From NCBI RefSeq assembly GCF_902652985.1, contig NC_047028.1:19964001-20028000 (forward strand): a stretch of 64,000 bases of DNA. Direction: 5' to 3'. This document shows positions 45,181-61,200 of the stretch, piece after piece; the stretch's first letter is position 1; every line of letters starts with the position of its first letter. The notes under the pieces were generated by a model. The model made no database searches and was not told where the DNA came from. It saw only the letters and a program-made list of their open reading frames with translations. The stretch comes from Pecten maximus. Lineage: Eukaryota. A program made the translations under genes and the position numbers.

Positions 45181-48100
45181 TTAATTTTTTTCAACATTCT
45201 TATCTTCATTCTAATCAGAACAAATGTTTGAAATTCTTCCATGGAAAACAGAAAAAAAACTATGGTATCATGTTTGAAAAAGCTCTGGACAAATACTTAG
45301 AACTTTCATATTAATCAATGACTGAACATTATAGGGTTATTATCCTATAAATACATGCATGTGCTTTCATTTTAAAATGGTGCATAATGATTTCAAGAAT
45401 GAAATTTCAAGAATGACATCAATCTAGTTATCTTATACCAAAGGATAGTTACATATTAAAAAGATAGATACAAAACCCTTTATACATATTCTTGAACAAT
45501 ACTTCTATTACTATATTCTATACCGATACAAAAGTGACTTACACACATGCGTACATACACAACAAGCCTGTTCTAAATAGATCAAGAGCAGCCAAATATA
45601 GTTTATGTTTCCCTGAGACCGTCTCCGATGTTGTATCAAATAGAAAAAGGCTGCAAATGGTTTAAAATGGAGGGTGGGGTAGGGGAGACCAATATGGAGG
45701 TGGGTCCTCAAGTGTTAAGCTTAATTATTCAGTCTCTACAACCATTCTTCTGGTGCACAGAATAAAAAAAATGGATACAAATTGAGCATATAATCCTCCT
45801 TTAAAACAAATGATGGTATGCATATGTTTTTTCTGACAATGTTGGGCTTACTCCTGATTTCAGATTTCTTAAAAAAGTATGGATATTTTTATAAAGAGCT
45901 CAATAAGTCATGAAAAGTTAAAATATTTCTAATTTTACTAATACACTAGACTATACTGCATGTCTACAATAGCAGTCAATTTACTTCAAAATTGACCATG
46001 AGAAATAATAAAGGAAGGTCAATACAGGTCAATCGGACCTTTAAAATGACCTACAATCTTATTGTTTTGTTTTTAATTCACTATTCATTTTGGTAGCCAT
46101 AATATCTTCAGCCTATTTTGTTGCCTAAAGAAGAAAGGTCTTTACTGATAGACTATTAAATGAATTCTTAGCACTGATGACAACTGACAAGATATATTTT
46201 TCCAGATCAAAGTTCTTCCAATGATTTATAATTGCTTTTAATTATACATGTTCATCATACATAAATATATACTCTTGGAAATTGTACCCAAGCAAACACA
46301 TGAAATGTATATGCAACTAGCACATATATATGCATGTTTATACTGTTGTTGACATTATTACAATCAATATTTCAAAATACTATCATATTAATTCGAATAT
46401 TTATAAAATCTCTAATGTATACAGACCCAGGTAAAATTCTTGTTTGTTGAAGCCAAATGGTCATGCAAAGAAATTTCAGCAGAATAATAAATAGTTCAGG
46501 CACCAAAAAAGACCTGTTTTAGAAGTTGTGTGATTCCTAAAAAGAGTTTTTAGTAGCTGCGCAAATCCTAATTATGCACAGGGTTGAAAGAATTTTTTTT
46601 AATGGAATGGCTTCTGTAAAGGAAGATAAAATGTGGCCTTTTCCAGGAATCCCAAAATGTTGTAATTACCTGGTAGCAAGTCTATGTAACTTGTTCTGGT
46701 AACTATAAAATTGTGCATATAAAATTTCTGTCAAGAATGACTTTTTCAGGACTTACTTCAAAATAACCTTACTAATAACATTGGCTACTAGAATCTTTTT
46801 TGTCCCTGTAGTGAATCTCAAAATTTTGGGGCCTTGTCTCTTTAAACCTGAGATATATTGAAGTCTGTAATATAAACATATATATATATTCGCAAGTCAT
46901 ATGATTACAGTTGTACTAAAATCATCAGATATTCCGACATATATTCCATGGTGAATGAGTAGTTGTCCGCCTATGTTGTGCTCTATCGCTGCCAGGTACA
47001 TTGCTGTACATTGCTATCATCATGCATGGCCATTTTGTTTGGAGCCTACATAGTCCCCGTAAGCTACCATTATTTTTTCACTCCTATATCGAGTCAATCG
47101 TAAATTCCTACGCACTTCGTTTGTTATAGGTCCACGAAAGCCACCTTTGCGGAGAAGAGAGTCTATTGTCTGTTCTATGTTCCATCCTGTAAGGCAAAAA
47201 AAGAGTGTTGTAAAGGTTACAAAACATTTGGTTTATTTTGTTTAAAATCCTATTAACAGCCACCCTTAGCAAAATGCAATGGCATTAAAATACCATTGAA
47301 ATAGCATTACTTCAAAACCATTGATAAGCCATTGAAATACCATTTATTTAGGTTGATCAATGCTTCTCATGAAGAACCATTGAAACACCATTTGAACACC
47401 ATTGAAACGCCATTGAAATGAGCCGAAATATTTAAATTAGTTTGCTAAATAAGGTATCATGAAACAATGGTATTTCAATGGTTTTTCAATGGTATTTAAA
47501 TGGTATTTTAATGGTATTTTAATGGCATTTCAATGGTCTTGGAAATAAATTTCAATGGTATATCAATGGTTTTAAGAAAAAAACAATGGTAATTCAATGG
47601 CATTCCAAGACTCCGTCTATCTACATGTATCTGAACCCAGGAACCTAGAATAATCAAATCACTTCTATATTCATGGTGTGGTTTTCTAGTGTTCAATTTA
47701 CGGTGTTCATCAAAATTATTAATAAAACTCGAAGGGTGGTAACTCTAAATATGACCTGGGTGTCCTAGGGTGGTGGTAGATTTTTTTACTGGACTATCCC
47801 TCAGACATTGTTTGATCTCCATCAGTCACTCCATTCATTAAGCAGTCAAGCAGATCTTTTCCCTTGAATCTTCTTGGTTTTGTTACATTATGCTGTATTG
47901 TGACTAACATTGATAGGTGAATTGAATAATAGCCCACAATGAATCTGATGATGGGCTAATAATTGAGAAAACATATCCAACTTTAAATAAAGATAACCTC
48001 AGAATATTGCTTCTTTTTCATTTGCATGTGTTTATTTTATTAATTTCTGGTATCCAAAAAGAAGTACATAGAGAAACATCACTGGTGACAATATGTGTTT

Positions 48101-48867
48101 CTTTCAAAATAGCTTTCACCTTTTTGGGCATACTCAAGTATTTGAGATACTCTACAGAAATGCCTAGCTTAAATTTCAGTTTAAAAAAAAAAGAGAAATC
48201 AATACGAAAGCATGGCACATATTTTTTAGATTTTCATATTTGGTAATTATCTTAGACCAATATCATAAGTCAGGACAACTGAAAAAAAAGTCACATTTTT
48301 GTTACCATTGCAACAGTTTCTGGCCATGGTACAACATGCATGTCCGTCCTAGGCCTGTTACAGACATTCTATTTTGTCAAAAATTTAATTTTACATGATA
48401 TGAAACATTTCTGCATGGATAAATATCATAATGTTTTGTATTTTAATCTTTGAATAAATTTTTAAAATTTGGATTTCCGGAGTTGCGTTTTTCTTCTTAT
48501 ATGAATTTGAACAAAGAAACAATTTATACAAAGGAATATGCCATTTCTACAGGTAAGAACAATCCAAAGACATAATGTTTATAACAGAAAAAAAGGTTTC
48601 CTTAAATGCATAGTGGTCCTAAACCAGTATTAAATGTTAATTACAAGAGTGACAATTACATAACAGGAACCGATTTAACAAGATGGACATTTTTGCAACA
48701 TGGTTTAACAGTGTTGTTCCGATGATCGATCATATTTGATATCTAATCGAAAGGCAACCAATTCTTATTAATTGATTATGAGGTTCACTTTCACTTCATG
48801 TACTACCTAGAAGAGAACGACAGTTCTGTATTAGATTAAATTACTACCAATCATGTTATTTAATATA

Positions 48868-49333
48868 ACAAGTACTAATTGTAAGGACAACCGTTAAATT
48901 AATGTCCCCCAAACTACCCCAACGGTCGTAAATAATGATAATGGAAGAGTTTTCACCGAAATCAAACAATATCTAAATTTGGGGGAAAAAAAAACCAGAA
49001 ACCTCAGACAATTTTGTAAGTAGTACCATTCTGATCAGCTTCCCTCAATCCCATATACCAATCTGTACCAAAATCAAACAATATCTAAATTTCGACCAAT
49101 CAGAGGCCACGAAATGGCAGCCATTTTTGAGTTTTGTTCCAAGACATGCACGTTGCACACCTTCTGCCCCCCAAGCAATACTCATGTGAAGTTTCATAAG
49201 GATCTGTCCAATAGTTTAGGAGGAAACTGCCGGACAAGTTCACCATGAAAAGATAGAAGAAAGCTAAAGAAGAATTTAATAAGAAATGAAACAAACACAA
49301 TATGGCCCCCCAACTTTGTTAGGGGGACATAAT
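48868..49333 (-). mobile_element. HINE-like element nested in the CACTA left arm
   Basis: ATGTCCCCCAA sub-TIR (~48902), terminal hairpin CCCCCCAACTTTGTTAGGGGGACATAA, and an internal core (GTGAAGTTTCAT, GGACAAG) like the 9761 element. Confidence 0.65.
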
Positions 49334-49726
49334 TAATTATAAAATATTAATGATAACTGTTCATCGGTGAAGACTGTAACTCTGAAATGGTATGAATGAA
49401 AGATAAGAAACTGCGAGTGAGCGGCAGCTAGACATAAGACAAAATGTCCAAAGAAAAATCCCATTTGTTAAGCATTATGTACGTACTAGTATGCCAACCG
49501 ATTAATCCTTAAATTCATTGTAGAAACTGCTAGAAGGAATGAAATAAATGCAAATTATCAAAATATTTATAAATGTTTGTCCATCAATGTTGAAATATCA
49601 ACTGATTCCCAACACTACTTCTTCAACATCTGGGGACACAAAGCGATACATTTCTGTCGAATTTCTCAAATACTTATAGTTTGTCGTCACCCTCAGACTT
49701 CTTTCTTCCTTTCTGCTCTGCTCCCC

Positions 49727-52700
49727 TTACTTGCAACTCTTTCGTTTTGATAACCTATGGTTCCCAATCTTGTTCTGGATAGCAGTGATGTACTTCTTCT
49801 GGGATAGTTCTTGAAAGTTTAATGCACTGCATCTTGTATGGAGATATTCTGAAAGAATAGTACAATTATTAAGGCATTAATGTCCATTCTTTTAAAGTCG
49901 GTATCAAACTACAAAGTATTAAAGCTGTAATTCACATCCCTCGCTTTCGCCTCAAATTGCGTTAATCAATGGACCATGAGTCACTGCGGCAAAAAATGTC
50001 TCTTTTCGTTAATCAAGGGGTCATAACTCCTGCAAATAATGTCCCAACAAAACCTGCGACCTAGCCCTTTAGGCATTTGACCATGTCACCAACTTCCTTT
50101 TAAGCAAAAGCGGGGGATAAAAATTGAATGCCTTCCTGTTGAACATAACATATATTTCACTCGTATGACAGAACTTTGCGATATTCTGTCATACTCGTGA
50201 AATTACTGAATTACGTAGCTGCTTCTTGCAATTAACAAAAAAGATCTGTCATATTTTAAGTTAATTTCTTTTATAAAAAGCTATATACTGTTTTTTCTTT
50301 TACTCCTGACATTACTCATACCTTGTATAGCCTCTCTCTTGTTGATAGGGAGGGAACTAACACCTTTGCTGGCGGCCATTTCTTCAAATGAAAATACTAA
50401 GTCCAGAACTTTATTCAACAGGTACAATGCTGGATTTTTCATGGATCCAGCCTTGTTCTCTATGCCCCTTAACTGTGATGGATTCACAAGAATTTCAGCA
50501 AAGTGATCTTTGTCATCTGGATCTATGATCAAGGGAACGAGTCTCTGGGAAATATAATAAAGTAAATAGGTTAGGGTACACATTAAAACTTAATACACAA
50601 TGTATTTATATAGCTATATTTTGGATACTTTGCAACAAAAAGATTTTTTTTGTATTTCAAGTTTCTTGAAACAAAGTCATTTTATCAGTTGTGTTGATAA
50701 TTTGCAAGCAAATAAAAACATTTGTTATAATAATTACATAGAATATGAAAGCCATTAATACAGAAATTTAATGTGTACATTTTACTTAACCTGGGATTGA
50801 TACTAGTGGTGGTCAATAATTCTTACTAATTTAAGTTGTTCTAAAGCATGGCAAAGTTGTAAATTAAACAATAACATATTTTTCTAAGAAAGAAATTCTC
50901 TTTCATTTTTAAATCTTTTTCTTTCAAACTGAGAAAATATGTACATGCAAGTAAAAAGACTTGACTTTTAATTGGCAAATTATTCAAATCCACACGTCTT
51001 TGTTGTTACCACTTTAACAAAATTGTCTGATGTCTTGGAAGGACTACTAGAAATTGTTAAGGATCGACTGAAAACTGTATCTGGTATATGTGGTCTTGCT
51101 GGCCACCTGATAAAACAAGTTGTAGTATTTAACACTGTTAACGAAGATTTTATGTGAAAGATAAATATTTCTAGGTACTGCATGAGTATGAGGCATATGT
51201 ACATACCATTTCACTTTTCTGTGCAGATTTGACAGATGATCTTGGATTCCTGTCAAAAACCTGAGTATTTGGCGAGTTCATGGAGTGCTGGTTGTTCCCA
51301 AATATTTCTCTTCCATTAGATTCCCCCTGTTGACGTAATTGCAATGTCAGTAGCTCCAGAAACCCAAGCAAGGTCACTCTTTGGTTGTTGTCCAACTCTC
51401 TAAAGTAATCTATTAAAGGATGAAGAGAAAAAAAAGGAAATTTTCAACAAGAATTAATATGTTAAATCCCTATTTACAAGTATCGATCACTGTGTGATCT
51501 AAATAGTATTCTCAAATTGAATAGTATCATGATCAAGAATATAAGACAATGTCAAGAAGGATTTGTATACAATATGTATAATATACAACCCCTTTTAAGT
51601 TATCAGACAGAGTTTAGAGTTATTATCAAATAGCTGAAAATCCAACTAGTAATTATATGAACAAAGAAAAAATACCAGGCCTCACCGGACAAGCAAAATC
51701 AAATTTCAAATATTTACCTTAATTTGAATTTTAAAATGATATCCAATATATATGACTAGGGCAACAATCCACCAAGGTTACATATTGTAAAATTGGATGA
51801 ATTTATTCAGTCTTCCAAGCCATTGTACTGTACAGACAGATGGATAAAAAAAACATACAATAAAAAGCATGAATTAGATTTTAAGATATATATCGAAACA
51901 CTTTTTATAAATATTTTTTTAACACATACCTGTGATCGGATTACAATGCTGGGACATGGGCATGTGCACTGGATACACTGGGGTACTTGATATTTCATGC
52001 TGTACATCCTCTTGTGATTCCTTCGGGTTATCCCATGAATAATTGGCGTTGTAGCCATAGTACTGGTTTTCACTTCCAGAAGCCGATTGAACTGATGGCA
52101 TTTCTGAATAAGAGAAACCATTGTGGTCCTGGTCATTCAAAACACTAAGGCCAGAAAACACAGCTTGTGATGTTTCCTGTTGACTATCCAAAACCAATTC
52201 TATCTTTTTTGTTGAGTACGCTTTCTTGGAGGGAGTCTTGGAATTTGTAATTGTTACAGAAGTAACTTCTGATGTGCATGTTTCTGATCTTGGCCTAATG
52301 CAAGTGTCAAATAGTCTAGTTTTTGTATGGCTTGTTTTTATGGATGGTGTCTTTTGGGTATCGCGGATAGGTGTGGCTTTGGAAGGAGTCTTTTTGGTCC
52401 CGCGGACAGGTGTGGCTTTGGAAGGAGTCTTTTCAGTCCTGCCGACAGGTGTAGCTTTGGGAGGTGTAAATGTCTTTTTGGTCCCACCTACAGGAGTGAC
52501 TTTGGACGGTGTCTTTTTGGTCCCACCTACAGGAGTGCATGGCTTTGGACGGTGTCTTTTTGGTCCCACCTACAGGAGTGGCTTTGGACGGTGTCTTTTT
52601 GGTCCCACCTACAGGAGTGGCTTTGGACGGTGTCTTTTTGGTCCCACCTACAGGAGTGGCTTTGGACGGTGTCTTTTTCGTCCCGCCGACAGGTGTTGCT

Positions 52701-53841
52701 TTTGAAGGTGTCCTTTCCGTCCTGCTGACAGTTGTGGCTTTGGGTGGTGTCTTTGATTTTTCAGATTCTGACTCGGGCTCACTAGCTACATTGGCAAATG
52801 CAGACATTTCATTAAGTTTTATGATGTCTAGTAATTTTGGTTCTTTCGATTTAACAGGTAGGGGTGTACACGTTTTCCTCTTTTTTTTAGCACTTTTCTT
52901 TTCATATTCATGGTCACCTGCTATAGAATCACTTCTGTCCTTTTTTTGTTCTGGCTGTGATGTATGGTGCTGTATTTCATCACTTGCCTGCAGTAGTCTT
53001 TTAAGCTTGGTCGCGGCTCCTCTTTTTCCTGATTGCTTTCTCTCCTTTGCCAGGGACAAAAGTGTCTCAACAACTCCTTCATCTGTCAGGTTTATGCCTT
53101 CGCTCTTGGTGAAATTCATAAATGCCCGAGCAGATGTTGCACCTGATGAAAAGAAATCAAAACATTTATAAATAATTCGAAGTCTTAAAAAAAGGAAATG
53201 GATACGAATACATTAAATGGTTTAAACATTCACAATAACTCGCACAGTATATAAAAAATATGGCTCGAGCTCGATATATATAACAGCAGTCGTGCATCCA
53301 TAGGCAATTAGTTTATATACTCTACATATACAAATTTACATGAAGCCAAAAATTCAAGGGAAAAAATATGAAAATGCGTGAAATACAGAAAGTCAAAAGT
53401 TGCATCAATTTTGGCTCGTCAATCATCAATGTAGATTATCTCGATCGCGACCTATACAGGTGCCCGATCGCGATCGTACATGTATCAATACACGGCGCCT
53501 AATATTAATGTTCAGTATTGAAACCAAAAAATATTGATTAACGTAATAACATTGTCTAAAATAAAATTTAAACAAAGAGAAATGAACCTTACTTAATCGT
53601 AAAATACTGCATGGATTTTATTTTAAACTTACTTCCAGAGAAAACAGTTGCATGAGCCTTCATACGGTTCGTCCCTTATCGATACTGTTCCGTCTTCATT
53701 AATTTCCTCCGTTGGATAATCTACGGAGACTGTACTTGTTGCTTCGTCTATGCATCTTACAGTTTGTTTTTTGCGGTTGACAATTTGCAGAGCTCTATCT
53801 GCCGTAAAGTATACAACAAGGTAATCTTCTTGTGTCGCCAT
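49727..53841 (-). pseudogene. Transposon-borne BEN-domain gene with 13-aa TPSK repeats, at least 2 frameshifts
   Basis: Exons on the minus strand: 53841-53633, 53142-51930, 51409-51207, 50544-50322, 49848-49727. The C-terminus ALYLLNKVLDLVFSFEEMAASKG..LPINKREAIQEYLHTRC..KYITAIQNKIGNHR fits the BEN helical pattern (recognised by eye, no HMM run). Frameshifts at ~53655 (exon phase mismatch) and a 4-nt insertion at ~52538. Confidence 0.7.
52340..52752 (-). repeat. 39-bp coding repeat (KATPVGGTKKTPS)n, ~10 copies
   Basis: Unit GGTGTCTTTTTGGTCCCACCTACAGGAGTGGCTTTGGAC on the plus strand. Confidence 0.95.
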
Positions 53842-54231
53842 CTTGCTCAAATTTGGTTTTGGCGCAATCGCAGCATCAGTGCAGCAGATATGCTTGAGTA
53901 CAGTACCGGACACGATCGTGGTCAATTTTGTGAAATTATTTTTTTCCTTAATGCTTTAATAGCACCGCAATTTATATTTCTTTATCATTTTTTAAATAGG
54001 TTTAATTTATTTTGAAAGAAAATTTATACATTGTAATATTTCCCTCCCAAAAGAAACTACAGAGTCACGGAAACCTGTTTTTATGCTATGCACATCAAGC
54101 GCTGAGGCGATCAAGATTGAGTCAGGATACATGTGGTTGCATTGTCAACTAAGTAATTCCCATTGCCAATATAATGGAATGGTAAAACCAAGCCAAACTA
54201 CGACGGTAGGAAGAGTGTATGCAGGGAGAAA
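53842..54231. promoter_or_regulatory. Putative bidirectional promoter between the BEN gene and the transposase
   Basis: 390 bp between divergent ATGs; the surroundings (53200-54600) are CpG-rich relative to the window. Confidence 0.55.
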
Positions 54232-57200
54232 ATGGATCAACCGTACGCGTCAACTAGTAAGAAACGCAAGAGAGGACCTTATGGTTCTAAAAAGGTAAGA
54301 TCGCCCCCATGTTCACTGCGCTAGAATCTAACTCAGAACATCAAATGTTTTTGAGATTGTCATATTTTCCTATCCGTCATTTAACTTACCCCTGATCAAG
54401 CATTTTCTTCATGTAGTTTGATTTTCTAACCAATTTTTTCGTCGTATGTTAGACGTAATGCGTACATACTCGCTCGTGCCGAAATGCATCGTTAGGCGTA
54501 GGAATTCTTAGACTTTTTTATAGTATGAAAAGCATAAGCTTACACACGCGGTTAATTAATTAATTATTAGCGGTACATAGTGCCATGCTGAGTCTTTAAC
54601 GTTTTAGGGGTTTGTTTTTTGCTATATTTCTTTGTATTTCCTACTTTATTTTCAAAATTGTTTCCTGAATTCGGTACTAGATTTTAGAAGGATTTTGACA
54701 ATCGTAGACAATTTGGTACATAAATATCCCAAGTTATATTCTTTTCATAATAGGCCTATTAATTAAATTATTATGCACCTGGTCAAACTGGAAAAGCTGT
54801 AAGAAACTGTCCATAAAAAAGTTGGGGAAATTCATAAAGTTTGAAACACAAAGAAAATAAAGCAAAATAAGAAAGAATTATGTGTGACAAAAAATTGGCA
54901 ATTAAATCACTGTATTGGTAAAATTAATAACAAGAAAGGGAATGGAACAACTTTGTATTAGACAGTCTTATCATTTTTGTTTCATAATCATTTCAGGGGT
55001 CTGATGAGGACAAGGATTTTCAGTGCATGAACTTGGTTGTAAAAGAGGACCACAGACTTCAGTCAACTATCAACATTGTTTCCCCAATTGCATCACATCT
55101 GTCAGCTGAACAAACAGTACAGGATGATAATCAGGGATGTGTTACAACCGTTGATGACAAACAATTAACACAAACAGATGATGATGATGATGATGATGAT
55201 GAAATATCATCAGCTGATGATCATGATGAACGATGTCGTGTTACGGATGAGAATATATTTGTTGAACATGAAAATGTCCTCAAGAACACACCTCAGAAAC
55301 CAGCAGGAGCTAACAGTGATGTACAAGACTCTCTGACACATGAGGCTATGGATACTTTTTTCTCCAAGATGGAGGACAAAGATTTGGATGATGATATTGA
55401 TGATTTGATAGACCAAATGTTACATGATAATCAGCTGCGAAACCAAGAAAATCTTGTGAATGATGAACAGACGGCTGTAATTCTTGAGGAAAGGGTTGAG
55501 GTCCTGCGGCAAATTACAGAAATATTTACAGACAGTGAAGAATCTAAAAACCCTGCAAATGATGAATCAACTGGATCAAGCAAGTTATTTCCAGACTCCC
55601 CGTACAGTCTCGGGCTATTGGTACTTCTAATATGTTGTTTCTTGATTCGTTTCCGGTTACCTGATGAAGCAGCAGCATACATGTTGAAAATATTCGCTGC
55701 TGTGCTTCCACAAGGACACAGTTTATTCCGTAGCTTGTATCACTTGAGAAAATTCATAAAGAAATTCACAGAAGACATGTTTCCCACCTTGCATTATTAT
55801 TGTAGTAGCTGTTACTCAAAGGTTGAGAAAAATGACAAAGTGTGTATATCGTGCAGAAAGGATCTCACAAAGTCCGGAGGAGTTGCATATTTTGTACATT
55901 TAAAGCTTATATCACAACTGAGGGCTCTATGGAAAACTCAAGACTTTGTGAATGACGTTAGAAATCACAGATTCCAACACATTAAGAACAATAAAAATGG
56001 TAATCTTAAAGATGTGTATGATGGACAATTATACAAAAATCTTTTCGAAAACGGCATTCTGCAAGAAGAAAATAATTTGTCATTTTCACTAAATACGGAT
56101 GGTGCCCCTCTGTTCAAATCTTCAAATGTAAGCATGTGGCCTGTGTACATGCTTATTAATGAACTTCCCATCGCAAAACGGAAACATCGACAGAATTCAG
56201 TGTTCTATGGTGTTTGGATTTCATCCAAAAAGCCTCAGATGTGGTCTTTTCTTCAACCCCTTTATTCAGAATTGAAACATTTGGAAACTGAAGGGGAAAC
56301 ATTTGAAGACTGTGATGGAAATTCATTCTTGTGTAAATGCTTCTTGCTTACGTGTACATGTGACTTGCCTGCCCGAGCTATGGTATACAATGTAAATCAG
56401 TACAATGGGGATTTCAGTTGCTGGTTTTGTTTACATAAAGGTGAAACACTTAAACTTGATACTGGTGGAATAGTTCATATTTTTCCATACAATAGTAGCA
56501 ATCCAAAAGGAATTCCAAGAACAAAGGAAAGTATTCTTGAAGATTTGACAAAGGTTCAAACCAATGTGGAAAATGGTGTGAAAAAGTTCACAGTTCACGG
56601 ACATAAAGGACCTTTCTGGTTTCTGTATCTGACATATTTCAATGCAGTATATAGTTGTGTGATTGACTACATGCATGGTATTTGCCTTGGAACTACCAAG
56701 CAACTCATGAACTTGTGGTTTGGTGCCTCGAATAAGAGTAAACCGTACTCTGTATATCATGCGAAACAAACTGTTAACAAATTCTTGTCAGAAATTCGTC
56801 CGACACTATTTGTAACCAGGGTCCCACGGCTGATAGATGACATCGCTCACTGGAAATCATCAGAATTTCGTAACTTTTTACTTTATTGGGGTATACCAGT
56901 GATGAGCAAAATCTTGAGAAAGGAATACTTTGTACACTTTTGTTTACTTGCTCGGGCAATCTTTTTGTTGTCCATGGAAAACATATCCCCGGTAGACATT
57001 GCAACTGCTGAGGGAGCTCTTCTTCTTTTTGTAGAGAATTTTGAAAGGTTGTATGAAGCAAGGTATACGACTCTGAATCTTCATCAATTGATTCATTTGG
57101 TTGATTGTGTTAGGCACACAGGACCTCTGTTTGTGAACAATTGTTTTATTTTTGAGGACCTTAATGGGTACATAATCAAACATGTACACGGTACACAAGG

Positions 57201-57816
57201 TGTTGAAAACCAGCTCGTAAATATTATTGGACTTGTAAAGGCCATTCCTATAATGTATGACAGATACTTTAAGGGAATAGATGATTGTGATTATGTTTTT
57301 GAGCTGTATCATGAGTTATCTGACAGTATAGCTTCAAGAAGAATTCATAAACATGAAATTGAAGATGGTATAGTCAGAGTAGGGAATTTATTCAATGGGG
57401 AACTAAGTGATGATGAATTTGCTGCCATTTCTAATTATGGAGTACAGTGTACTAGGAATGTTTCAAAGTATTATAATATCAATATGTATAAGAAGGGGTT
57501 TTATGTATATGGGAAATTGTACAAAAACCTTGTAAAAAGACAGCAGCATGTTATAACATTTTTTCATGAGAATGACTACAAATTTGGATCTGTGGTGTAT
57601 TTCATGGAGTCAAATGATAAGACCGGTAATAAAATCAACCTCGCACTTGTTGAACCGATGAAAAAAGTCAAGTCTGTTGGCAGTGTTTGGAAAATAGAAT
57701 TTAGGAAAAGTTGCATTGCCATCCCATTGAAGTGCATAACTAATATCAACAATTTTGTGGGAATAACTGGTGATTTCTTTGTATGTCCTCCTCCAAATAG
57801 GTATGACCGTGACTAG
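54232..57816 (+). CDS. EnSpm/CACTA-type DDE transposase, 960 aa, 2 exons
   Basis: Exon 1 54232-54294 (MDQPYASTSKKRKRGPYGSKK, NLS-like) splices GT-AG in frame to exon 2 54997-57816. Motifs: CxxC..CxxC, DVYDG, LNTDGAPLFKSS, WPVY..INELP, TCDLPARA, QYNG..CWFC, DYMH, WKSSE, NLHQLIHL, GPL, FIFE..NG. No internal stops. Confidence 0.9.
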
Positions 57817-58294
57817 AATCAAGTTCATATAATTCCAGTTTACATGTAATGTTGTATAGGGGTATAACTTCTACAGAATTTGAAGTTGAAACTTCAAAAA
57901 TATAGTACTTTACTTCTATACATTTATTTTATTGTGTAAAGACAATTGACATGCATGTATTTGCATTGCATATTGTTTACATTAATTATGCAAATGTACT
58001 TTTATACTATAATAATAAAAGGTAGTATCATTCTGTAGAACTCAGAATTTATATATCCAAAATATATACTGGTAGTAATTCTCCAGTGCAGGTGAATATG
58101 AAAGTCTAGATCTGTGGCCATTATTTTTCATTTCTCAAAAAAATGGTCAGAAATGGTTGAGCCAAAGCTTTTCTTTCTAGAGCATGGATGAAAATAATGG
58201 TCAAACAAAGTCAATGGTATTTCAATGGCATTTAAATGGTTCACCTGTGAGTAAACCATTTTTTTGTACCATTGAAAGACCATTGATCTGAAAA

Positions 58295-61200
58295 GTGAAA
58301 ATATCGTTATTCTGTTGTACTCGTAAAACATATGTCATATTCAACGGGAAACCAAACGCCATTAAAACAAAAATAATGACGGTTTGGAAATCATCGCAAT
58401 AAGAGGACTGAAAATGAACAATTTGTTCGTGATGCAATAAAATATATCTATCCACTTTAAATTCAAAAGATAAAATTAGAAACTAAAACGTTTAGAAGGC
58501 GGAATAATGTTTTACGTATGGTACCTGTAGTATTGTCTTTTTAGGAGATGCAGCATCTCTGAAGACAACTTAACAATTGCCAACATTATAATGAGGGTCG
58601 TTTCGAGAATCACAGGCCTCAAAAAAAAAAAAAAAAAAAAGGGGGAGGGGGGATTCGAAGTTCTTTACAAACCTACCATTATTACTGACCGACCATGCAT
58701 CATCCTCTCGCAAACAGAGTTTGGCAGCCCTTAATACCAGCATACTAAGAAACAATATTAGGTCCCTTGGTTAGTAAGAAATTGTTTAAAGAAAACACGA
58801 ATTTTGACTTGTTACATTGAAAGTCGGTAAAAGATCATTCATTTGAACAGAATTGATAACTCTTCATCCCAGCATGTTGCATGCACAGTAACAGTAGACA
58901 TCGAGCCTTTTGGTTATTGAGAAGAAATGAAGGGAAAAGTTGACAACGTATGGCGGACACTGTGCCATGCCATAAGCTCAATCATTTGGCCTTTCTGGGG
59001 TTTTTGGCTTAAGGCCCTTCTCATTTTAGCTATGAAGCGTGGTCCTTTTTGATTTTTTTTATCCAGTTAATCAAGCCCCAAATAAGGAATATTTTCAAAA
59101 ATTAATATATACGTTCTACTTTTGATGAAAAGATATTGTAAGGCCTGTTAAAATATCTAGACCGGCGATACATGCCCTTTGCCCATATTGTCAGTAACTT
59201 AACTAAATTAAATGAATTCCTTGTTAAATTACTATTAACAAATATATCAATCTTCATTTTATTAACGAACTATCTAGATAAGCCATACATGCCCTTTGCC
59301 CATATTGTCACTTAACTAAATTAAATGAATTCCTTGTAAAATCACTATACGTGTTAGACTTAGATAGATTAGAAACTACAGTAAGTAAAAGAAACAGAAT
59401 TGAACACAACTACAGAGGTAAGTTGACATTTTCTTTATTGCCTCTACTTTTGATTATAACAGTGATATAACATACTACATACATACACACAGGATAAGGC
59501 ATGTGGTGGTGATGACAATGCTACACCCAACCCTGGGCACTTCACAGTGATTGGTCAGAAAAATCTGTGAATGTTGGTGATTGGTCAGAGCCTAGCAACA
59601 TGGGCACTTAACAATGATTGGCCAATGTCTAGCAACCCTGGATAACTCACAACGATTGGTCAGTACTTTGCAATCATGGATACTTTGCAACAATTGGTCA
59701 GTGCCTTGCAAACTTGGGCACTTCATAATGATTGGTCAGTAACCTAGAAACCCTGGACACTTCACAACAGTTGGTCAGTACCTAGGAATCCTGGACACTT
59801 TACAACGATTGGTCAGTGCCTAGGAAACCCTGGCCACTTCACAACAATTGGTCAGTACCTAGAAAACCCTGGACACTTCACAACGATTGGTCAATGTACC
59901 ATTTAACATCTGGCCAGCATTGATTGGTTAATTAAAATCTTCAAAGTATAAACTTAGTTTCCACATCATTGTTTTGCCTTAAATGGTTCCAATGTACTAC
60001 ATCCGACATATAGATATCATTTTTATTTTATCTGTATGTTGACAAAAAACCAAAAGTGCTGAATACATTTTCAAAATGACTTGATTGCAATGTGAGTGTA
60101 TGACTGATAGACCAATCCCTGTGAGTGGCCTTCAGATGTACCTCCCGACTACACACTATCAGTGTATTTCTATACAGACAAGCCGATACATTATACTCCT
60201 ACAAAGTCCAATAAAACACAACAACATGACTAGGTATGAAGGAGAGAAGGGAACACAGTTCTATTTCAATCAACAATCTAGGTCAGGGCTGTGCTTGATT
60301 TGTTGTATGCCGGTCTTTAATGGAATGTGCCAGTCACTTGATAGGGGCATGCCAGTCTTGTTGATTTTGCCAATGAGTGGCTACCCAGTCAAGCCGGATT
60401 CTTTGCCACTGTACAAATCAAGCAGAGCCTATTGAGGAAGTGGTTGACATGAGACACCAGTATCATGGTAGATTGATAACAGTTTTGATAAAATTTGTTA
60501 AGTTAATTGTATTTCTATTTGATGGAATGTTCAAAGATAAAATGTACGAACATTATTATAAAATGAATTCCCAATACATCTATTACCTGAAAAGGGGCAA
60601 GAACAAATTTTCTTCAAACATTGCAGTTGTAACTTGACTTGTCTCTTTGAGATCCAGCTCATTTTTTTTAAACAAATAATATTTTCGTATTAAGAATATT
60701 TAATCTTTATCTTAAAACAGTTCTAATTAAAATATTTCCATTTAATGCAGGTAAAGTTAAAGAAAGTCAGCCATGCCACAGAATAGCAAGTATCATATTA
60801 AAAGTAATTAAAGTTCAATGATGAAAAGTTCAAAAAGATTTAAAGTTCTATAAATGCAAATACATTGTAGTATGATATCACCACAAAAATAGTATGTAGC
60901 AATCCAAATGTCTAACATATAATATTTATCATGCAATAAGCCCTTGTGTCAAACATTACATACCAATGAAACAGCGTTCATTCCCATTTCTATTTTAAAC
61001 TAAAATAGATATGGGTGGGCTTATCGCCAACCATGGGCTTATTGCAGAATATGATACATATATGAAATACTGATAATATATTTGTCGTACAATTGTTGTT
61101 TTTTTTTTACATAAATTGTTAAAAAAAAAAACAGATCATCTTTATTCAGAAACACATTTTTCTTTCTCAAATTTGTTAATCAACTTTATTATTTATATTT

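Follow-up and report, generated by a model that had tools for sequence, protein, structure and literature searches.

The window analysed here is the 64,000-nucleotide stretch C14:19964001-20028000 of the Pecten maximus genome (contig NC_047028.1). Within it lies, in one copy, a very young, Mirage-like cut-and-paste DNA transposon from the CMC superfamily, hereafter named family A. The element encodes a DDE transposase and, in divergent orientation, a second protein (gene 2, or the BEN gene), whose residues ~536-653, encoded by exons 4 and 5, we conclude from sequence relatives and structure prediction to be a divergent BEN domain. Gene 2 lies inside the termini in every complete family A copy and also in a sister family, hereafter family B.

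A family of near-identical transposon copies

The genome of P. maximus (918 Mb) was searched, and 12 near-identical copies (~99.9%) of family A were found. In an alignment with ten fetched copies, the window copy showed ~99.9% identity starting exactly at position 47263. The left 378 bp gave 12 genomic matches, all 100% identical, and the transposase was 100% identical at the amino acid (aa) level in 11 loci, the twelfth copy encoding a partial transposase. A reading of the window made earlier from its letters alone (the sequence-only reading) had set the limits of the element at 47263 and 58294. The former is the exact left limit of homology with the ten copies, and the latter is where the homology of this particular copy ends.

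Measured on the complete copy located on C3, the full-length element has 11,163 bp. Perfect 12-bp terminal inverted repeats (TIRs) and 2-bp target-site duplications (TSDs) were found in all nine complete family A copies and in both family B copies. The termini read CCCTTAG...CTAAGGG, the right terminus of complete copies (...TTTTTGCTAAGGG) being the reverse complement of the left one (CCCTTAGCAAAA). In the nine complete copies with readable ends, the TSDs were GA, AT, AT, GT, TA, CA, CT, AA and AT, and the flanks were all different. These copies are therefore true insertions and not assembly duplicates. An Rfam scan of the element returned no matches.

The transposase gene

The open reading frame (ORF) at 55027-57816 on the forward strand encodes 929 aa. 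According to the sequence-only reading, the transposase would measure 960 aa and start with a short exon, bearing a nuclear localization signal (NLS), that the ORF list had missed. This was confirmed: exon 1 starts with the ATG at 54233, measures 63 nt and is followed by an in-frame GT..AG intron (54296-54996), so that the protein of 960 aa is the sum of 21, 10 and 929 aa from two exons joined in phase 0. The splicing of this intron was seen in a contig of public sequencing run X3, with a GT..AG joint at 54292>54995 (cut +2).

The best Pfam match of the transposase was DUF1258 (54.9 bits, cut-off 33.1, E 1.2e-14), followed by Transposase_21 (35.4 bits, cut-off 28.6, E 8e-9), while Plavaka fell just below its cut-off (25.5 bits against 26.3, E 1e-5). 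The catalytic signature is present in the order D358 (NTDGAP), D446 (CDLPAR), C465xxC468, H686xxxH690 and E710 (FIFED), in ORF numbering, these residues being assigned by motif and by the Pfam envelopes 326-479 and 654-732, not by structure. The order D, D, C(2)C, H(3)H, E is the definition given for the CACTA/Mirage/Chapaev/Transib clade (PMC12730594). A zinc-ribbon-like CxxC...CxxC motif (CSSC...CISC, residues 259-276) lies upstream of the catalytic core.

The second gene is spliced and transcribed

The start codon of gene 2 (53841, minus strand) lies 391 bp from that of the transposase gene, and five coding exons specify a protein of 653 aa. The region between the two start codons is presumed to act as a bidirectional promoter. 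Four introns were spliced, all with CT..AC ends (GT..AG on the minus strand): 53143-53632, 51410-51929, 50545-51206 and 49849-50321. The divergent five-exon neighbour gene anticipated by the sequence-only reading was thus found, with canonical splice sites and with introns spliced in contigs. The ORF at 50281-50583, tried as the last exon, was rejected: exon 4 ends at 50322 and is spliced to exon 5 at 49848, a joint with CT..AC ends that is present in both X2 and X3.

The transcript evidence consists of contigs of four public runs, from four studies, over 49700-55500, and these contigs give no transcript ends, strand or expression level. Four introns were spliced in run X2 and four in run X3, two in run X1 (these three runs being guessed to be RNA) and one in run X10, which is on record as RNA. 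Since the introns are present in all 12 genomic copies, the spliced contigs must derive from RNA. Divergent spliced transcripts had been suggested as a check, and all five introns of the two genes were spliced in run contigs. The 3' untranslated region of gene 2 continues leftwards, with a contig extending 619 nt beyond 49700.

On the complete C3 copy, the phases are consistent and all splice sites are canonical. The NCBI model P0001 ("uncharacterized protein LOC117323146", 653 aa), retrieved in a word search for which C3 exon 2 served as query, corresponds residue for residue to our exon-by-exon reading. Exons were searched singly, and the whole-protein analyses used this NCBI entry. Among family A copies, coding indels keep the reading frame (3, 39 and 78 nt), the window copy excepted.

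The number of 39-nt repeats in exon 2 (window 52300-52800) differs among copies (L013-L031). Counted from 2 nt inside its 5' end, this exon measures 1168, 1207, 1210 or 1285 nt and is in frame in every copy measured outside the window.

A predicted BEN domain at the C-terminus

In the ESM Atlas, residues 535-653 had BEN clusters as neighbours (score 0.94; 198 of 256 features in common), and 19 of 30 matches fell into that set. A phmmer search with the last 182 residues against 1.84 billion representatives found 44 relatives, hosted by oysters, pearl oysters, axolotl, Pleurodeles and paddlefish. The Pfam BEN domain was detected in 7 of the 32 relatives that were scanned, at best with 40.2 bits (cut-off 23.2), and two relatives carry the UniRef label "BEN domain-containing protein".

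The alignment of these relatives was used for an AlphaFold2 model of the last 182 residues, which reached a mean predicted local distance difference test score (pLDDT) of 88, and of 98 over residues 70-182. Of the 14 best Foldseek rows shown (to rank 15), 13 were BEN domains, with probabilities of 0.5-1.0 (at least 0.9 in all but one) and E values of 0.04-1.2. VIA-align gave Z scores of 12.3 for NACC1, 11.5 for BANP and Bsg25A, 11.0 for Insv and down to 8.0 for 14 BEN entries, the next fold scoring 5.3, and its BEN matches span 77-104 residues of chains of 91-164 residues. The best fold matches (NACC1, BANP, Bsg25A and Insv) are structures solved with their DNA targets. The BEN-like C-terminus that the sequence-only reading had noticed was therefore borne out by the fold, even though the suggested check for Pfam BEN gave no match.

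Exon 3 encodes a long helix (model residues 8-32, pLDDT 89-96), which in this model is a candidate for multimerisation. The N-terminal domain of gene 2 matched no family in the ESM Atlas (best score 0.88), and the AlphaFold2 model of its N-terminal 70 residues, built from four sequences, is beta-rich with a pLDDT of 58, too poor for a fold search.

Two of the relatives, P0025 and P0027 of Ambystoma mexicanum, carry an N-terminal KRAB box (40-43 bits) fused to the BEN-like domain (17 bits). It is possible that the axolotl KRAB-BEN proteins are host repressors built from a transposon-type BEN domain.

A sister family retains the partner gene

Family B comprises two copies, on C9 and C6, of 9,563 bp and 99.5% mutual identity. 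Their ends read CCCTTATCGAAA... and ...TTTTTGCTAAGGG, with the 2-bp TSDs CA and TA. The family B transposase is 61% identical to that of family A and likewise has a short basic first exon, ending in ...TRRGPYKK. All five exons of gene 2 are kept in family B, in the same order and the same divergent orientation. The co-occurrence of the second gene with the transposase inside TIRs, the absence of which would have spoken against a two-gene element, was thus observed in every complete copy of family A as well as in family B.

The aa identity between gene 2 exons of the two families is 35-57%, the highest value being that of BEN exon 4 (57%). In this exon, the proportion of nonsynonymous differences (pN) is 0.31, against a proportion of synonymous differences (pS) of 0.87. 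Silent sites are saturated between families A and B (pS 0.76-0.87), which is why pN and pS are quoted and no dN/dS, and substitutions within family A are too few for dN/dS. The search for purifying selection that had been proposed therefore yielded a pN well below pS between families, but no dN/dS. At the level of sequence comparison, this shows a partner protein kept under constraint.

Phased repeat arrays at both ends

Repeat clusters had been reported from both arms of the element, and this was correct. Exact matches to the motif CCATTGAA number 15 in the window, where 4.7 would be expected; none of 100 shuffles reached 15, and 12 of the 15 matches lie in the two arms. In a complete family A copy, the CCATT/AATGG core has a density of 17-31 per kb in the terminal 400 bp versus ~1.5 per kb inside, frequently in runs with a spacing of 11 bp. 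The left array forms an imperfect palindrome of ~330 bp, its opposite-strand self-match being 68% over 333 bp.

The arrays of families A and B have an identical block layout, with 39 and 43 CCATT-core sites, respectively, in the terminal 450 bp of both ends. They differ in the site itself: the consensus is ATACCATTGAAAT in family A and TTACCATTTATTT in family B, and the base that follows the CCATT core is G in 22 of 39 family A sites and T in 35 of 43 family B sites. The core is hence CCATTG in family A versus CCATTT in family B.

Apart from the ends, one CCATTG and three AATGG cores were noticed within 75 bp at 54160-54235, just upstream of and at the transposase ATG, where the interior background is ~3 per kb. 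The coordinates of all features are given in Table 1.

Table 1. Features of the family A element in the window copy
Feature	Position	Strand	Remarks
Family A element, window copy	47263..58294	+	Left end complete; last 128 bp missing at right
Left TIR CCCTTAGCAAAA	47263..47274	+	Perfect reverse complement of right end ...TTTTGCTAAGGG in 9 complete copies
Left subterminal array	47278..47610	.	8 forward then 11 reverse CCATT-core sites, many spaced by 11 bp; consensus ATACCATTGAAAT
Gene 2 exon 5	49727..49848	-	Second half of predicted BEN domain; coding to 49730, stop 49729-49727
Gene 2 exon 4	50322..50544	-	First half of predicted BEN domain
Gene 2 exon 3	51207..51409	-	Long helix then linker; joints in X1, X2, X3 and X10
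Gene 2 exon 2	51930..53142	-	Lysine-rich; 39-nt (13-aa, TPVGGTKKTPSKA) tandem repeats
Gene 2 exon 1	53633..53841	-	Beta-rich N-terminal region
Region between divergent start codons	53842..54232	.	391 bp; includes 5' leaders
Transposase exon 1	54233..54295	+	21 aa MDQPYASTSKKRKRGPYGSKK, KKRKR basic cluster (NLS-like)
Transposase exon 2	54997..57816	+	Stop codon included; DDE catalytic core
Right subterminal array	58110..58294	.	Truncated in window copy

Possible roles of the BEN protein

We propose, at what we judge to be even chances, that in the BEN protein the element encodes a sequence-specific DNA-binding cofactor of its own, which would bind the end repeats and help to pair the ends or to load the transposase. 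The putative target of the BEN domain would be the CCATTGAAAT arrays. The protein would occupy ~40 CCATT(G/T)A sites, which are phased by 11 bp and lie within 350-450 bp of either terminus, and would bind the repeats along one face of the helix. Its multimers would join the ends or recruit the transposase, which would cut at the CCC..GGG termini and insert with a 2-bp duplication. Such a scheme would resemble that of TnpA in En/Spm or of the Myb-like protein in PIF/Harbinger, without homology to either. Binding to the end arrays is plausible. The circumstantial support for it comes from the DNA-binding BEN folds being the closest ones, from the phasing of the arrays and from a site core that differs between families with differing BEN domains. 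The BEN gene and the phased arrays are also retained together in two families.

Several observations weigh against this proposal, starting with the BEN domain itself. No match to Pfam BEN (PF10523) was obtained at E values up to 10, with single exons or with the whole 653-aa protein, and the only Pfam row for the whole protein P0001 at E up to 10 was Thioredox_PDIA6_C (E 1.4). A profile of the 44 relatives searched against PDB sequences ranked BEND3 and NAC1 first, at a non-significant E of ~0.7. It could also be the zinc-ribbon-like region of the transposase that recognises the arrays, as happens in hAT elements. Family B has no conserved counterpart of the CCATTG/AATGG cluster that lies at 54160-54182 in the transposase leader. 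Short, non-autonomous derivatives of the ends, of the miniature inverted-repeat transposable element type, were absent among the scored genome matches to the left end, and there is consequently no natural sign that the ends alone suffice for mobility. Finally, another, more distantly related CMC family of this genome (35% transposase identity) was examined over 8 kb upstream and 6 kb downstream; no BEN exon was seen there, nor do the ORFs around it match a relevant Pfam family. The BEN partner therefore belongs to the A/B lineage and is not general to the CMC superfamily.

The BEN protein could instead be a repressor, an insulator or an anti-silencing regulator, which would set the output of the bidirectional promoter or shield the copy from heterochromatin, leaving end recognition and synapsis to the transposase alone. 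We regard this as unlikely, but it has arguments in its favour. The closest folds (Insv, Bsg25A/Elba, BANP, NACC1 and BEND3) are, according to the structure titles, those of repressors or of boundary or chromatin factors. A short divergent control region is common to both genes, and four CCATT/AATGG cores lie at most 75 bp from the transposase ATG in family A. The transposase also owns a zinc-ribbon-like motif and an NLS-like exon. Two facts speak for a role at the ends over one at the promoter: the leader cluster is absent in family B, and the motif is 10-20 times denser at the ends than inside, which fits an end role better.

The arrays might also be read by the N-terminal DNA-binding region of the transposase, the BEN protein recognising some other sequence for host targets or for target-site choice. 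Many cut-and-paste transposases bind their own subterminal repeats, as established for Ac and the P element, and the CSSC...CISC motif is located upstream of the catalytic core. This explanation seems to us quite improbable, and it gives no reason for the retention of a BEN gene alongside the same phased arrays in two families whose silent sites are saturated. Less probable still is a passenger gene, captured from the host and of no use to the element. Capture of host fragments is a habit of CMC/CACTA elements (Pack-CACTA, PMC6379663), and the protein of gene 2 matched no Pfam family. Against this reading, gene 2 is complete, spliced and expressed from five exons, family B retains it with a BEN-exon pN far lower than pS, and its coding indels in family A preserve the frame, the defective window copy aside. 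Moreover, no separate host copy of gene 2 was found among the scored matches in the genome, the other matches being partial or degraded copies on C13 and C2749.

The window copy is damaged

The other copies extend 128 bp past 58294 to the right TIR, whereas the homology of the window copy stops there. The right TIR was found nowhere in the whole window, and the window copy is therefore truncated. The alignment of ten copies further revealed two 4-nt TGCA insertions private to the window copy, one in exon 2 (52536-52539) and one in exon 1 (53649-53652), both of which shift the frame of gene 2. The window copy is the only one with a broken exon 2, the other ten having it open over 389-428 codons, and the contigs of X1-X3 lack the TGCA at 53649. 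The transposase had been described as intact, which it is, but the copy as a whole does not hold two intact genes: its BEN gene is broken, and its right end is gone. Lacking the right TIR and bearing two frameshifts in its BEN gene, the window copy is expected to be immobile and unable to make the BEN protein.

Both private insertions convert a single TG into TG-CA-TG (GGAGTG|GC to GGAGTGCATGGC and CAGTTG|AG to CAGTTGCATGAG). The TG-CA-TG pattern is the residue expected from excision of an element that produces 2-bp duplications, consisting of a 2-bp TSD and two palindromic (hairpin-type) nucleotides, and the insertions may be the footprints of two insertion-excision events within the window copy. 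A second NCBI model, P0002 (607 aa), leaves out a segment within exon 1 as well as a single repeat unit in exon 2, the pattern that modelling around window-type frameshift breaks would give.

Damage was also seen elsewhere. The copy on C2 (C2:48495337-48498123) has one TAG within the transposase frame, and the match on C5 (C5:17077267-17078685) is limited to transposase residues 456-929, at 97%. Counting the window copy, at least 3 of the 12 copies are thus already damaged. The copy on C16 (L021, C16:30792795-30802695) has an extra segment of ~2.7 kb at the position of window ~49970, in intron 4 of the BEN gene, which is probably a nested insertion.

Of the 31-letter words in 49900-55400, 20-30% also occur in runs X18-X20, which are labelled as two other organisms. 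Sequences nearly identical to parts of the element may thus be present beyond P. maximus, by way of relatives, contamination or horizontal transfer. Just outside the element, nine tandem repeats of 38-39 bp (...CACAACGATTGGTCAGT...) occupy 59528-59897; they are unrelated to the CCATT arrays.

Significance of the two-gene design

Family A looks currently or very recently active, in view of its 12 copies of ~99.9% identity, its intact reading frames and its spliced transcripts. Among animal members of the CMC superfamily, it would be a rare case that lends itself to experiments, and one with a two-component design. No earlier description of a CMC-superfamily transposase paired with a BEN-type second gene was found in the literature searched, and no paper there connects BEN domains with transposons of the CMC, CACTA or Mirage type; Repbase and Dfam lay outside this search, and a library entry may exist. 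For annotation, NCBI LOC117323146 and its paralogues are transposon genes and not host genes.

If the BEN protein does read the CCATT arrays, a new BEN subfamily would have a defined DNA target, and CCATTG in family A and CCATTT in family B would offer a natural specificity pair for comparison. The element would then also be an animal analogue of the TnpA/TnpD system, and a transposon origin or vehicle would be suggested for some animal BEN genes. A broader picture, which we hold to be rather doubtful, joins these points: BEN domains would ride CMC/Mirage transposons as an end-binding cofactor, the first animal counterpart of TnpA; host BEN genes such as the salamander KRAB-BEN genes would be domesticated copies; and the patchy spread over bivalves, salamanders and paddlefish would reflect horizontal transfer.

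Classification and comparison with known systems

The sequence-only reading had called the element an animal CACTA element. A two-gene DNA transposon of the CACTA-related CMC superfamily was indeed found, but its CCC termini, 2-bp TSD and best match to DUF1258 do not fit CACTA proper. CACTA/En-Spm in the strict sense was rejected on these termini and this TSD, in place of the CACTA pentanucleotide and a 3-bp TSD. The apparent CAC.../...GTG at the limits of the window copy, tried as CACTA-type ends, is not a TIR and results from the flank and the truncation. We file the element as a Mirage-like member of the CMC superfamily on account of its non-CACTA termini, its 2-bp TSD and its DUF1258 best match. 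Mirage elements are said, in Repbase and in the description by Yuan and Wessler, to make a 2-bp TSD, with which that of the element agrees.

DUF1258 has been equated with the Mirage group (PMC3985635). The element has TIRs and a TSD in the range of 2-5 bp, as expected of the CMC/CMCT clade, but not the termini usual in that clade, 5'-CA..TG-3' or CAC..GTG (PMC12730594, PMC4079192). With Mirage/CMC elements it shares a DDE transposase with DUF1258 as best match, short TIRs and a 2-bp TSD, and it differs from them in its divergent BEN gene, its long phased subterminal arrays and its CCC..GGG termini.

The BEN domain of the element resembles those of the cellular BEN proteins Insv, Elba/Bsg25A, BANP, NACC1 and BEND3 over the whole domain fold (Z 11-12.3, 93-104 aligned residues, root-mean-square deviation 1.9-3.5 A). 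With BEND3 and NAC1, the alignment shows a conserved LD..K..AI-type block and a C-terminal N-x-R basic helix in common. Unlike them, the element's domain is encoded by a mobile element, has 18-20% sequence identity to the cellular domains and falls below the Pfam BEN threshold.

In PIF/Harbinger elements, the transposase cooperates with a separate, small Myb/SANT-like DNA-binding protein (PMC12730594, PMC9710019). The two-gene cut-and-paste design of these animal and plant elements is the same, whereas the superfamily of the transposase and the DNA-binding fold of the partner differ. Since the transposase of family A has its own basic NLS-like exon, it probably does not need the BEN partner for nuclear import.

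The maize CACTA element En/Spm encodes the transposase TnpD together with TnpA, which binds subterminal 12-bp repeats; both arise from one alternatively spliced transcript, and insertion produces a 3-bp TSD. Our element belongs to the same superfamily, encodes two proteins and carries many short subterminal repeats in both orientations at both ends. It differs from En/Spm in its lack of CACTA termini, its 2-bp TSD, its two divergent transcription units and the predicted BEN fold of its second protein. As the gene 2 protein matched no Pfam family, it matched none of the En/Spm TnpA-type families either, and the BEN protein would be at most an analogue of TnpA, not a homologue.

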